Assembly (NCBI RefSeq): GCF_006345805.1
Contig: NC_043002.1
Location: 61,442,001-61,506,000, forward strand
Length of the DNA stretch: 64,000 bases
Direction: 5' to 3'
Source: Octopus sinensis
Taxonomy: Eukaryota
In this document: one piece after another, positions 1,607-57,013 of the stretch
Layout of the letters: each line of letters begins with the position of its first letter
Numbering within the stretch: the first letter of the stretch is position 1
Notes under the pieces: model-generated
Told to the model about the DNA's origin: nothing
What the model saw: only the letters and a program-made list of their open reading frames with translations
Database searches by the model: none
Program-made: the position numbers and the translations under genes

Positions 1607-2668
1607 TTAGTTCAGTTTTTCTAGATTAGGGAGTTCAATACCAGGTTGACGGTCCTTTATGTAAAGTATTTTTCTGTTAGTTGTCTTCTTACAACATATT
1701 TGCTTCAAGTTTTCGCGGAACATTTTACTGGCAACGAAATACAAAATAAAGTTCAAACTGTTATTAGCACAAGCTAACGTATCCAATGATAAGTAAGTCA
1801 CAGAATCCATGCATCCATTTAGTGTCATTATGAAGTAGTAAATTGACACAGGGTATGTCGTCAACAAAAATATAATATTTATAGTAAAAACTATATAAAT
1901 GCTGTTCCTCAACCGTGCTGCAGAGTTGTGCTGTAAATTTTGGCCAAGGTTTGGTCGTTTAAGTAATTTGTAAGTCATAATGATAGAGCTGATAATTAAA
2001 AAAACTGCTGGTATAAACGAATAGATTGCAACTGAAACAAGAAAAATATGTTTGTTGTCTTTTAGTAATACTATAATCGTTGCATAAATTATGCAACCGC
2101 AACAGAGAAGTGTCAACATTACAATATACGGAATGTGGGGCTTAGGGGAAATACGGCGAGAAAACGGGCTGTAAACTGCCAAGAGGCGTTCCATTGATAT
2201 AATGACTGTTAACCAGGATGAATATATATTTATAATAAAAACGATGTAAGTGAAATATATATTGGTCACAAATATTTTTATCTGATCAAAAAATTTCATA
2301 GAATGTATTATAATTCTTGGATAATTTCCCCATACTGCAAGTAAATCTACAACAAGCAGGCAAAAGAGGTATGGTGTAATATTCGACCGAGGTATTTCTT
2401 TCCTGCATAATAATCCAATAACTGCTATATTCCCGATAGTTCCAAAAATCATTAACATTAAAGAAACATATCCTATAGTGTTATTTAAAACGAATGGTGC
2501 ATAATCCAATAAGGAGCTACAGTTTGTCGTGTTGTATATGTTGCTAAATTCGTTATCAGTAAAATTTGTAAGTTTCCATTCCTTAATTTCAAAATCAACA
2601 GTTTCTGAAATATTATATTTCTTTTCTGCCATTGAAAATGTTCTATGAGAGCAGTAGTTTTCAGTCAT
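1607..2668 (-). CDS. Intronless class A GPCR, copy 1 (353 aa; FMRFamide/sex-peptide-receptor-like orphan group)
   Basis: Seven hydrophobic segments; TM1 GTIGN, TM2 LLVVDLL, TM3 SSWLTVIISMERLLAV, TM5 YSFIP, TM6 FLLTTYP, TM7 NNSLNFILY, helix 8 FRENLKQICC; several N-terminal N-glycosylation sequons. The start could be M1 or M13. Confidence 0.93.
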   Translation of the reverse strand: MTENYCSHRTFSMAEKKYNISETVDFEIKEWKLTNFTDNEFSNIYNTTNCSSLLDYAPFVLNNTIGYVSLMLMIFGTIGNIAVIGLLCRKEIPRSNITPYLFCLLVVDLLAVWGNYPRIIIHSMKFFDQIKIFVTNIYFTYIVFIINIYSSWLTVIISMERLLAVYSPFSRRISPKPHIPYIVMLTLLCCGCIIYATIIVLLKDNKHIFLVSVAIYSFIPAVFLIISSIIMTYKLLKRPNLGQNLQHNSAARLRNSIYIVFTINIIFLLTTYPVSIYYFIMTLNGCMDSVTYLSLDTLACANNSLNFILYFVASKMFRENLKQICCKKTTNRKILYIKDRQPGIELPNLEKLN

Positions 2669-3558
2669 TTGACAACTTGTAACACCGAAAGTACATTAAT
2701 GAAAACACCCAGCAATGCCTGGCCTTATCAATCTGCTCACTACTGTGACTGCTGCTTCTCGCCAGCATGATGGCGATGATGACGATGATGGCGATTATCT
2801 CGTTACTAATAAGACACTTTCCAATAAAACAAATAATGAATCGATTAATACTGATTTGTATTTCATTTACTCCAATATATGTTAGATATTTTCATTGGCT
2901 AGGCACTTGTAAAATAACGGATTTACACAGAAAAAATAAATGGAAGGACTGCACGGGTAATATACAAAAATTTCTGAATCCATTACGTTGGGTATATGAA
3001 ATATTTCATAAACCTATTTTGCTGCTACTATCGACGATGCTGTTCTCGTATTTGTAAATACTACAGCTGCTGCAACAGCTGTTATTGTTGTCTTTTATAA
3101 CCAGGCTCCAAGTCGGTCTTTGTCAATTATAATTATTCTACACACAAATACAGAGATTGTCGTGCTGATATATACTTATTGTAATACAACACTGTATCTA
3201 CCGTTTTTACCCGTACATTAATAAATAGCTTTAGTGAATATTAGCTGGAATATAAACCAGGTCGTATGACTTGCGTAAATACTTCCTATTGATTTATGGA
3301 CGTCATTTAATGACAATAGTAATACTGCACCGCCACCTACTGTTTGATATAATTTCTAACGAATGATACATCCCAAATTACTTTCATTAGTGAGTGGTAG
3401 TCATCATGTGATTTACGACAAACACTCGTAGATCCTATTATGTAGAAGCAAATCTCTAAAAAACTTAATAAGATGTTGATAGCTTTAGACAGAGATTTGG
3501 GAAGTGTATCTTTTATTAATATAAATCCTTAAATCCCTTAAAAATCTTTTTAAATGTT

Positions 3559-3592
3559 TTAGCCCGAAGGCCGCGGCCATGCTGGGGCACCA
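3559..3592 (-). mobile_element. SINE/LINE 3' tail fragment
   Basis: TTTTAGCCCGAAGGCCGCGGCCATGCTGGGGCACCAC contains the shared tail motif GGTGCCCCAGCATGGCC on the minus strand. Confidence 0.65.
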
Positions 3593-3764
3593 CTATAGTT
3601 CATAGTATTTTACATTTTATGATATGATACTCATTGACGGAATAAAATATACTAATAAACGCATTCCTTGTCATTAGTTTTGACTCTAAGGCAGAGTAAT
3701 TAGAAAACCGAACGAATTGCTGCAAAGCATTTCCTCCGTATTTTCGAAAAGAGTTCAAATAGGT

Positions 3765-3890
3765 CGACTTTGGCCATCATTCTTTCGGGATCGATAAAAT
3801 AACAGTCAAGTACTGGAATCGGTGTAATCAACTTCCCCTGCCCCTCAAAATGTGCTGCCCCGGTGCCAAATTTTGAAACCATCACCAGTT
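3765..3890 (+). mobile_element. tRNA-derived SINE body (family A)
   Basis: GTCGACTTTG...TTTCGGG.TCGATAAAATAA core, recurring at 11970, 19070, 19290, 24095 and 62480. Confidence 0.7.
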
Positions 3891-3907
3891 TCACTCCTTA
3901 AATGTAC

Positions 3908-54240: not shown

Positions 54241-54374
54241 ACTCATTGAGGAATTAGATTTAAGGTAGTGAATTATCATGACTAACGATGAAAGAATTGT
54301 ATTCACCATTAAAAAAGTATTTTACGTTGGCTATCATTTCTCTTCCACAATGTAATCATATATTACTTTATCCG

Positions 54375-54810
54375 TTTACTTTTTTCAGACCTTTGACTGC
54401 TGCCATGCTGGTGCACCACCTTCAGTCGATGAAATCGATACCAAGATTTATTCTCTGTAAGATTAGTACTTATTCTACTGGACTCCTTTGCAGAACCGCT
54501 AAGTTACGGGGCCGTAAACACACCAACATTGGTTGTCAAATAGAGACACACATATACATGTGTGCATGTATATATTTATACATACATAATTACATACATA
54601 CGTATGTATGTATGTATGTATGTATGTATGTATGTATGTATGTATGTATGTATGTATGTATGTATGTATGTATACGACGGGCTTCTTTCAGTTCTCGTCT
54701 GCCAAATCCACTGACATGTCTTTGGTCGGCCCGAGGTTATAGTACAAAACATTTTCGCAAGTTGCCACTATGTGTATCGGAGGCATGCTTCTTACCCCAC
54801 AGCCACGTCT
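54375..54810 (-). mobile_element. Composite SINE with central (ATGT)n
   Basis: Same organisation as 16045-16482. Confidence 0.7.
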
Positions 54811-55589
54811 GTACCTCTCAATCAAGATTTCATTGAAATCTACGAAGGCATGAATTTCCGTTCTCATATTTGTGAAAACTTGCATAAACATAACGTATTA
54901 CGAAAGCTCAATCAGAAACGTTTAAAAAAAGCCCAAATAGTATCCTATGTCAACAGTTTTGTAATAATATTTTTATGTAATAATAATTGTAATAATATTT
55001 TATTTAATTATTAAACAATATAATAGAACATTTAAACATGAAAGGCTATGATATAGCGTCTAAATGAAATAGGAGTCACAGCAATACATAGGTAAAAATA
55101 CAAATGACTGAGAAGTATTGGGCGATGGGTCATCGATGAGCTTTCAGCAACACATCGAGGAATCCCCACTCTCTTTCGAAAATATGTCCGAACTATCTCA
55201 GAAAATATGTCTGAAAGCTGCTAAGGAATAGGCAGAGATTATGTTCCGCCCAGACTATGAATTAGAAAATTATAAATGTGAAACATCGACATGTATCTTA
55301 ATGCGTTTGAATATATTATAATATAATTTATACATATAAGCAAACACACACGCACACATACAGATACGTGAATATTGAAGGATGAAAATGAGTTCTCAAC
55401 ACCGCATTGATGGATATAACATTTTTATTTGTGCTAAAAATGTGGGTAGATATCCCAGTGCCATACCAGTCTTTTTAGCCTATCACTTGGAGAAAGGTGA
55501 TTTCCTCTATTTAGGAAAATTTGTATATATATATATATATATATATATATATATATATATAAATGAATATATATATATATATTATATAT

Positions 55590-55811
55590 ATACTAAGCAA
55601 TAAGGGTTTAGCAACGAGTTGCCTTACCACATACCGAATTTAGAAATAGCAGTCAAAGGGTTATAGCTATTTCTTCTACTAAAAAGGGAGATCTCAGTTT
55701 TTACTGAGATCTCCCTTTTTAGTAGAAGAAATAGCTATAACCCTTTGACTGCTATTTCTAAATTCGGTATGTGGTAAGGCAACTCGTTGCTAAACCCTTA
55801 TTGCTTAGTAT
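55590..55811. repeat. Perfect palindrome: 109-bp arms and a TTTT loop
   Basis: 55590-55698 is the exact reverse complement of 55703-55811 (checked by eye). Confidence 0.95.
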
Positions 55812-56086
55812 TACTTAAATTTTCCTCGAATGAGGCTTTTACATGCCGAAGACTACTTGGTGTAATTGATAATTTTTCCAAATTAATTAATTTCACCCTT
55901 CATTATATATATATATATATATATATATATAAATGAATATGTCTTTATATATCACTTAGAGCGTGTGGAGCAATTGACAACAAAATATACATTGATAATA
56001 CATAAATGATAATTGTTAGGAGAGCTAGAGATATTTAGGTAGATAGATACTTACTGAACCGGTAAGTTACTCAAAAATGAAAAGAC

Positions 56087-57013
56087 TTAGGTCGTTGAAT
56101 TCTGCAGCGAATACACCGCATTTCTGTTCACTGAAGTCCCTTTACAAAACATTTGTTTCAAATTGTCGCGAAACGATTTGCTTCCCACAACATACATCAT
56201 AAAGTTGAACACGTTATTGATACAAGCTACCATGTCCAAAAACAGGTATAAAACCGTATTCATGTTGCTCAGTAGTGACATCACCACATAATAAGTAGAT
56301 GTAGGGAACGTTGTTAGAAGAAAAAGCGTGTTTATAGCGATGACGACATAAACAGTACTCTTTCTCTTCTCTGAGGAATTTCTTTGAAAATTTTGACCGA
56401 GGCATGGTGGATGCAGTAATTTATGCAACATAAGAATGGAACTGATGATCAATATCATGGCTGGTATGAATGCATAAATGAAGTGTACAATACAAAAAGC
56501 ATACACATTATTCCTCAAAAATACTGTCAACATTGTATACATAACGGTAACACATAAAAGAAGACAAAACAACACAATATAGGGTTTATAACGTGCAGAA
56601 GAATGAAAGCTGGAAAATGGGGAAAAAATTGCCAAAAGACGTTCAACAGATATGATAACAGTTATCCAGGAGGAATACATATATATAATAAAAGTGAATC
56701 CCACATATATTTCACTGTTGAATATACCTGCATAGGAAATGTTATATTGAAAGTTAGTTGATAGCCATATCAATTTTGGTAAATATATCAAAATTGCAAT
56801 GAAATCCACAAGAGCCAAGCAATGAAGATATGGAACAATTTTAGTCTGACGCATTTTCTTCTTGAAAAAAATTACAAAAACGGCAAAATTTCCGATAGAT
56901 CCAAGTATCAATAAAATTATTGAACCATATTGTATAGCTATAAGAAAATGTATATTCGTATAGTTTTCTGTCTGGTTACCGTTGGTCGATGCGTTCACTT
57001 CTGTTTTGTTCAT
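56087..57013 (-). CDS. Intronless class A GPCR, copy 4 (308 aa)
   Basis: GSIGN, LALVDF, SSWITVIISVER, YAFIP, FLLTTFP, NNVFNFMMY, FRDNLKQMFC; several N-terminal sequons. Confidence 0.93.
   Translation of the reverse strand: MNKTEVNASTNGNQTENYTNIHFLIAIQYGSIILLILGSIGNFAVFVIFFKKKMRQTKIVPYLHCLALVDFIAILIYLPKLIWLSTNFQYNISYAGIFNSEIYVGFTFIIYMYSSWITVIISVERLLAIFSPFSSFHSSARYKPYIVLFCLLLCVTVMYTMLTVFLRNNVYAFCIVHFIYAFIPAMILIISSILMLHKLLHPPCLGQNFQRNSSEKRKSTVYVVIAINTLFLLTTFPTSTYYVVMSLLSNMNTVLYLFLDMVACINNVFNFMMYVVGSKSFRDNLKQMFCKGTSVNRNAVYSLQNSTT

Follow-up and report, generated by a model that had tools for sequence, protein, structure and literature searches.

A 64,000-nucleotide stretch of the Octopus sinensis genome (NC_043002.1, positions 61,442,001 to 61,506,000; hereafter the window, in whose own coordinates positions are given) contains a tandem array of four intronless, probably functional genes for orphan G protein-coupled receptors of class A (Srw-like), together with one dead copy. 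The four receptors, numbered copies 1 to 4 by position (Table 1), lack the disulfide bridge that joins C3.25, at the top of transmembrane helix 3 (TM3), to extracellular loop 2 (ECL2), and ECL2 itself is nearly absent. In the interpretation favored here, to which a probability of about 0.7 is assigned, the cluster belongs to a small short-loop clade, named so far from Octopus only, in whose ancestor ECL2 was deleted and C3.25 was subsequently lost, so that TM4 and TM5 form a hairpin, while signaling is likely to be conventional.

The missing TM3-ECL2 bridge

The C3.25-ECL2 disulfide is common, but not obligatory, in class A receptors. An earlier note on the window, made from the DNA letters, had described the bridge as missing from all four copies, and a recount bears this out. 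Position 3.25, located 25 residues upstream of the Arg in the E/DR motif (R161, R116, R120 and R125 in copies 1 to 4), is occupied by N, D, S and S, respectively, and never by Cys. The turns between TM4 and TM5 that had been proposed (KDNKH, KTHEY, KNEVY and RNNVY) are all present and free of Cys, and R3.50 is separated from the TM5 proline by exactly 59 residues in each of the four copies, as had been stated. Furthermore, no copy contains a single Cys from TM2 (2.45/2.55) to 3.55 or TM4. With no Cys between TM2 and 3.55, no TM register can place one atop TM3, and an alternative register that restores the bridge is therefore excluded by the sequence itself. Copies 3 and 4 do have a Cys at about position 5.40, at the top of TM5, which is without an extracellular partner.

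AlphaFold2 models of copies 2 and 3 contain seven TM helices followed by helix 8 and agree with each other on the register. In the model of copy 2 (predicted local distance difference test score, pLDDT, 74.5; predicted TM-score, pTM, 0.72), TM4 spans residues 134 to 156 and TM5 residues 160 to 192, and TM3 begins at residue 92, which puts D91 at 3.25. In that of copy 3 (pLDDT 70.0, pTM 0.68), TM4 spans residues 138 to 160 and TM5 residues 164 to 195. The TM4-TM5 turn consists of three residues in both models (L-K-T in copy 2 and L-K-N in copy 3), shorter than the approximately five of the earlier description. As modeled, such an ECL2 cannot cap the orthosteric pocket, which is probably left uncapped by this loop.

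It is extremely improbable that the architecture is an artefact, with a normal ECL2 and bridge supplied by a cryptic exon, by another TM register or by sequence hidden in the assembly gap of the window, and this explanation is largely refuted. The ECL2 turn sits midway in uninterrupted open reading frames (ORFs) of 297 to 353 codons in DNA of 35% G+C, the value for the window. The R3.50-P5.50 spacing of 58 to 61 recurs across 19 clusters that were assembled independently. The O. sinensis RefSeq protein P0008, a homolog with a tandem neighbor, has a coding sequence that forms a single block. The absence of any Cys between TM2 and 3.55, the agreement of the two models on the register and the distance of the gap, more than 10 kb from every copy, likewise speak against it. 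What favors it is the tandem neighbor of P0008 on O. sinensis chromosome CM016864.1 (L005 14174-15074), which is frameshifted exactly at the TM4-TM5 turn; this frameshift reflects either a pseudogene or an assembly error. The Logan contigs cannot be classed as transcript or genomic and hence are no proof of intronless mRNAs.

Descent and constraint of the short-loop clade

Among 1.84 billion representative proteins, a search with the profile returned 7107 relatives at E <= 1e-3, but only 22 at E <= 1e-30. The four copies and retrieved relatives, 156 sequences in all, were aligned to the profile and scored. C3.25 is kept in 128 of the 156, at R3.50-P5.50 spacings of 63 to 91 residues (median 80), almost always together with a Cys in the loop. 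Among the 28 sequences in which C3.25 is absent, 24 have a spacing of 63 or less. At spacings of 62 or less C3.25 is kept by none of the 156, the shortest bridged forms having spacings of 63, 63, 65 and 67. Most relatives thus combine C3.25 with a longer ECL2, and by this alignment a short ECL2 without Cys is derived within a superfamily whose members nearly all keep the bridge.

The relatives also include forms between these extremes. Distant relatives such as P0013, P0005 and P0006 (the last from the bivalve Sinanodonta) have CK at 3.25 and an ECL2 of about 25 residues with a Cys. At a spacing of 70, both Cys are present in P0011 and neither in P0012 and P0027. Two tandem P0011-like receptors, 62% identical to each other, were found on a contig of the ENA assembly ERZ21867824 (L004 695-1594 and 10001-10954); they keep both C3.25 and the ECL2 Cys at the same intermediate spacing of 70. 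A rough neighbor-joining (NJ) tree recovers the short-loop clade as monophyletic and shows two or more other losses that occurred independently, in P0012/P0027 (P0027 being from Octopus bimaculoides) and in P0051/76/84, both of which sit inside groups of bridged receptors. The bit-score ranking had been read as a stepwise series from P0011 toward the clade; this reading was dropped, as the P0011 group is not sister to the clade in the tree, and only the existence of intermediates is claimed.

Octopus is the source of every named member of the short-loop clade, and among these the clade looks octopus-specific. A search with a 19-sequence profile gave at least six matches, including the O. bimaculoides UniRef protein P0178, an ortholog to which copy 4 is 90% identical over 255 amino acids (aa). 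For copy 2, no exact match was obtained from public assemblies. The genes have the hallmark of a cephalopod or lophotrochozoan lineage-specific class A expansion, in which paralogs stand in tandem and one-to-one orthologs are missing outside the lineage: five copies lie within the 64 kb of the window, tandem pairs occur elsewhere in O. sinensis, and all named close members are from Octopus.

With regard to class, copies 1 to 4 match the Pfam profile 7TM_GPCR_Srw with 37.3, 37.6, 45.9 and 37.7 bits (gathering cut-off 22.2), although the match is confined to profile positions ~190 to 318 of 319, that is, the C-terminal 40% over TM5-TM7. The 7tm_1 profile (cut-off 30.5 bits) is matched by copies 2 and 4 with 59.5 and 36.3 bits, while copies 1 and 3 score just under the cut-off, with 29.8 and 29.6 bits. 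Of the class A anchor residues, the receptors retain N1.50, D2.50, E/DR(L), P5.50, P6.50 and Y7.53. They have T in place of W6.48, F in place of P7.50 and S in place of Y5.58, and W4.50 is missing as well; in all of this they resemble the wider Srw-like family. W4.50 is absent in 150 of 155 relatives, including ones that retain the Cys bridge, and T6.48 (in a TTxP motif), NFxxY and N/S5.58 are equally family-wide and are found in long-loop, bridged relatives. Since the loss of W4.50, T6.48 and NFxxY are common to the whole family, they are unrelated to the loss of the loop. The earlier note correctly found no Trp in TM4, but the residue does not belong to a syndrome of loop reduction. Its further proposal, that a distinct class of ligand or mode of activation follows from the architecture, finds no support: as the microswitches are the same in long-loop, bridged relatives, nothing points to a mode of activation peculiar to the short-loop clade, and the residues of the Na+ site and of the G-protein side are invariant.

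Conservation is concentrated in the inner part of the receptors. N1.50, D2.50, S3.39, W3.41, E/DRL, P5.50, F6.44, N7.45 and N7.49 are invariant in the four copies and nearly so in the clade, and pocket positions such as 3.32, 3.33, 5.42, 6.51 and 6.55 vary between paralogs. Over 19 clade members, the entropy of the TM halves is 1.98 bits on the extracellular compared to 1.32 bits on the intracellular side (p = 6e-9). In the aligned sequences, a conserved inner core with a variable outer half is the pattern expected of signaling-competent receptors that diversify in ligand specificity. A short motif in intracellular loop 3, RPNLGQ (residues 193 to 198 of copy 2), is also strongly conserved.

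The genes are under purifying selection, with ratios of nonsynonymous to synonymous substitution (dN/dS, by the Nei-Gojobori method) of 0.28 to 0.40. Compared to their orthologs from another sample series, copy 1 (P0007, 72% identical) and copy 3 (P0002, 76% identical) both have a dN/dS of 0.28, and copy 2 (P0001, 65% identical) has one of 0.40; between copies 3 and 4 the ratio is 0.32. Since copies 1 to 3 each have their own ortholog, the duplications are older than that species split. Copy 3 is also 93% identical to the fragment P0022. These values bear on the very unlikely alternative that the receptors are decaying or non-signaling relics, which lost bridge and loop under relaxed constraint and retain no function as ligand-activated receptors. 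The dN/dS values are fairly high, one neighboring copy is a pseudogene, and W6.48, P7.50, Y5.58 and W4.50 are all missing, as such decay might produce. However, the ratios are clearly below 1, the four ORFs are intact, and the adjacent pseudogene shows what decay looks like. The orthologs of copies 1 to 3 remain 65-76% identical and the O. bimaculoides counterpart of copy 4 is closer still. Moreover, conservation of the cytoplasmic half and of the Na+ site is as described above, and the absent microswitches are shared with thousands of relatives in the wider family and hence are no sign of decay.

Part of the clade may have replaced the lost bridge by another one. Copy 1 has an N-terminal Cys, C50, within an N-C-S sequon and a Cys in ECL3, C286; copy 2 likewise has C4, within an N-C-T sequon, and C242 in ECL3. 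Copies 3 and 4 have neither. Among the full-length members, both Cys occur in six (copy 1, copy 2, P0001, P0007, P0018 and P0020), both are absent in nine (copy 3, copy 4 and seven others), and no member has only one of them. This covariation suggests that copies 1 and 2 probably form a substitute disulfide between the N-terminus and ECL3.

The favored scenario would then run as follows. In the clade ancestor most of ECL2 would have been deleted, which would have reduced the R3.50-P5.50 spacing from the family median of 80 to 58-61. The loop Cys would have been lost in the same event, after which N, D, S, H or Y would have taken the place of the unpaired C3.25. TM4 and TM5 would form a tight hairpin through a polar turn of 3-5 residues (L-K/R-x), with the stability of the fold probably provided by other features, such as the N-terminus/ECL3 Cys pair in the subclade of copies 1 and 2 and W3.41, which is invariant throughout the clade. 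Signaling would probably proceed through G proteins in the conventional way, given that neither the cytoplasmic half nor the residues of the Na+ site vary, and the outer helix halves would diversify as expected for new ligand specificities, which may be chemosensory or directed at peptides or small molecules. Of these elements, the architecture of the sequences, its derived state, purifying selection on the genes and the distribution of the clade are demonstrated; the substitute disulfide, the coupling and the kind of ligand are inferred.

Several points weigh against this account. The NJ tree carries no support values and the P0011 group is not the immediate sister of the clade, so that the order proposed for loop shortening and Cys loss is tentative. 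Read-archive assemblies supply most of the clade members, and a restriction to Octopus is suggested by the named ones. The covariation of the two Cys is confounded by phylogeny and perhaps reflects just 2-3 independent events. Finally, the confidence of the AlphaFold2 models is moderate (pLDDT 70-75) and their alignments are shallow (19-21 sequences); the open pocket and the contact between the N-terminus and ECL3 are predictions, and the pocket might instead be capped by the N-terminus or by the 13-residue ECL1.

Organization of the window

The features of the window are listed in Table 1. Copies 1 to 4 are mutually 44-62% identical. The fifth copy, which lies outside the range of 1607-57013 covered by the earlier note, is interrupted by several stop codons and by two or more frameshifts. 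A TM7 part is not detectable in it; the short TM4-TM5 spacing is still visible.

Table 1 Receptor genes and other features of the window
Feature	Positions	Strand	Details
Receptor copy 1	1607-2668	minus	uninterrupted ORF, 353 aa from first ATG
Receptor copy 2	34601-35494	minus	uninterrupted ORF, 297 aa
Receptor copy 3	37097-38008	minus	uninterrupted ORF, 303 aa
Receptor copy 4	56087-57013	minus	uninterrupted ORF, 308 aa
Fifth receptor copy, pseudogene, closest to copy 4	~59819-60527	minus	N-terminus to TM6 start
Assembly gap, 100 N	23920-24019	no strand	intergenic, between copy 1 and copy 2
Degenerate non-LTR retrotransposon reverse-transcriptase fragment	24462-26161	minus	RVT_1 E = 1.7e-19; adjoins assembly gap
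Degenerate non-LTR retrotransposon reverse-transcriptase fragment	44543-45438	minus	RVT_1 E = 6.9e-06

The start codon of copy 1 is possibly Met13, which would give a protein of 341 aa, as the ortholog P0007 begins at the equivalent position (MAEKKYNIS in copy 1 and MADKLHNIS in P0007; the N-terminus of copy 1 corresponds to 2633-2668). Such a start would drop Cys6 from the protein.

The distance from the assembly gap is 21 kb for copy 1 and 10.6 kb for copy 2, and no receptor ORF crosses it. As a scaffold join, it bears only on the linkage and distance of copy 1 with respect to copies 2-4. The rest of the window contains reverse-transcriptase fragments and simple repeats, and among the ORFs of at least 110 aa outside the receptors only reverse-transcriptase fragments were identified. 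Simple-sequence tracts are located at 29753-30379 and 23800-23860; a TA/CA-type microsatellite gives rise to a spurious ORF of 208 aa, and GAT/GAC triplet repeats immediately precede the gap.

Comparison with known receptor systems

The closest architectural parallel is found in the melanocortin receptors. MC4R has a four-residue second extracellular loop without Cys, D122 at position 3.25 and no P5.50, and its N-terminus is paired with ECL3 through C40-C279 (PMC8563958). The octopus receptors are alike in their ECL2 of about four residues without Cys, in the lack of C3.25, in the Asp at 3.25 of copy 2 and in the N-terminus/ECL3 Cys pair of copies 1 and 2. Unlike MC4R, the octopus family keeps P5.50, has T6.48 and NFxxY, and has no Cys pair within ECL3, which contains at most one Cys. 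In addition, D3.25, which belongs to the Ca2+ site of MC4R, is limited in the octopus family to copy 2 and one fragment.

Homology to the melanocortin receptors was considered and rejected. A sequence-profile search of the PDB, with E values of ~1e-9 to 1e-6, led to P2Y1, MAS, GPR139, the neurotensin receptor and others like them, and Foldseek matched both models to orexin, opioid, adrenergic and similar class A receptors with TM-scores of ~0.7. Across the searches the matches are generic class A receptors of the peptide, purinergic, amine and orphan kinds; a melanocortin receptor was neither among the best 60 PDB sequence matches nor among the top 50 Foldseek matches of either model. Given the lack of a melanocortin match and the retention of P5.50, the MC4R-like architecture is therefore probably convergent. 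The convergently evolved, lid-less pocket of the earlier note thus stands insofar as the state is derived and was not inherited from melanocortin-type receptors, whereas the openness of the pocket rests on the models.

The parallel raises the possibility that the receptors are adaptive, with an open pocket that serves a new class of ligand or mode of activation, for instance for bulky or surface-bound ligands, with a metal-assisted peptide site as in MC4R or with lateral entry of lipids. This is unlikely. Besides the features shared with MC4R (the four-residue loop, D3.25 in copy 2 and the N-terminus/ECL3 Cys pair), it would be favored by a conserved basic residue, R/K2.60, that faces a conserved Asp, D7.39, in the putative pocket, and by the appearance of short-loop, Cys-less forms at least three times. 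However, repeated loss can equally be explained as a neutral result of loop deletions, the distribution of D3.25 and the retention of P5.50 set the family apart from MC4R, and the activation residues are the same as in long-loop relatives. A more specific version, rather more doubtful still, holds that these are an octopod-specific receptor type with a permanently uncapped pocket, an N-terminus/ECL3 brace in some members and the R/K2.60-D7.39 pair, which might bind ligands inaccessible to ordinary class A chemoreceptors, such as bulky, surface-bound or metal-coordinated peptides, and would have converged functionally with the melanocortin receptors. The architecture alone reveals neither a new signaling principle nor what the receptors bind.

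A precedent for the replacement of the canonical bond is known from the odorant receptor OR51E2, in which an N-terminal Cys was shown experimentally to take the place of the missing one (PMC13486327). The principle is the same as in the short-loop clade, but the partner in OR51E2 is a Cys in ECL2, which is a long lid, while the candidate partner in the octopus receptors is in ECL3 and their ECL2 is nearly absent. The nematode Srw chemoreceptors and the FMRFamide-receptor-like superfamily are linked to the cluster by the Srw profile match and by the motifs ER[LVF], TTxP and NFxxY, which the relatives share. In contrast, the profile is matched only over its C-terminal 40%, and the long-loop relatives nearest to the cluster still have C3.25 together with the ECL2 Cys.

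Receptor expansions in molluscs and other lophotrochozoans provide the nearest genomic context. Cephalopod-specific, partly tandem class A expansions have been described as groups 1 and 2, with expression reported outside the brain or in chemosensory tissue (PMC6408891). A 2025 survey of 238 lophotrochozoan genomes reported that the typical linkage of TM3 to ECL2 is missing from lineage-specific class A expansions, and that gastropods, cephalopods and other molluscs have no intra-loop bridges either; it described ECL2 as 25-30 residues long (PMC11886862). Neither study describes a short ECL2, and Ritschard 2019 mentions no disulfides or loops (PMC6408891, PMC11886862). The short-loop clade agrees with these expansions in comprising tandem, fast-evolving orphan class A receptors with Octopus members, which keep a DRY-like motif and Y7.53 and have no TM3-ECL2 disulfide. 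It differs from the lophotrochozoan expansions, compared here by description, in that their ECL2 is long (25-30 residues) and that of the octopus clade is a turn of 3-5 residues.

The missing bridge had thus already been reported for such genes; new are the near-absent ECL2, the spacing threshold of 62 or less and the covarying N-terminus/ECL3 Cys pair. The compact (~300 aa), intronless octopus receptors are candidates for deorphanization and for the study of class A folding without the TM3-ECL2 bridge. They also correct the generalization that lineage-specific receptors of lophotrochozoans have a long ECL2. Taken together, the superfamily offers a natural series from a long, bridged ECL2, through shortened forms that are still bridged (down to a spacing of 63), to a near-absent, unbridged one (62 or less). 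This series shows how far ECL2 shrinks before the canonical disulfide is given up, a change that happened more than once.

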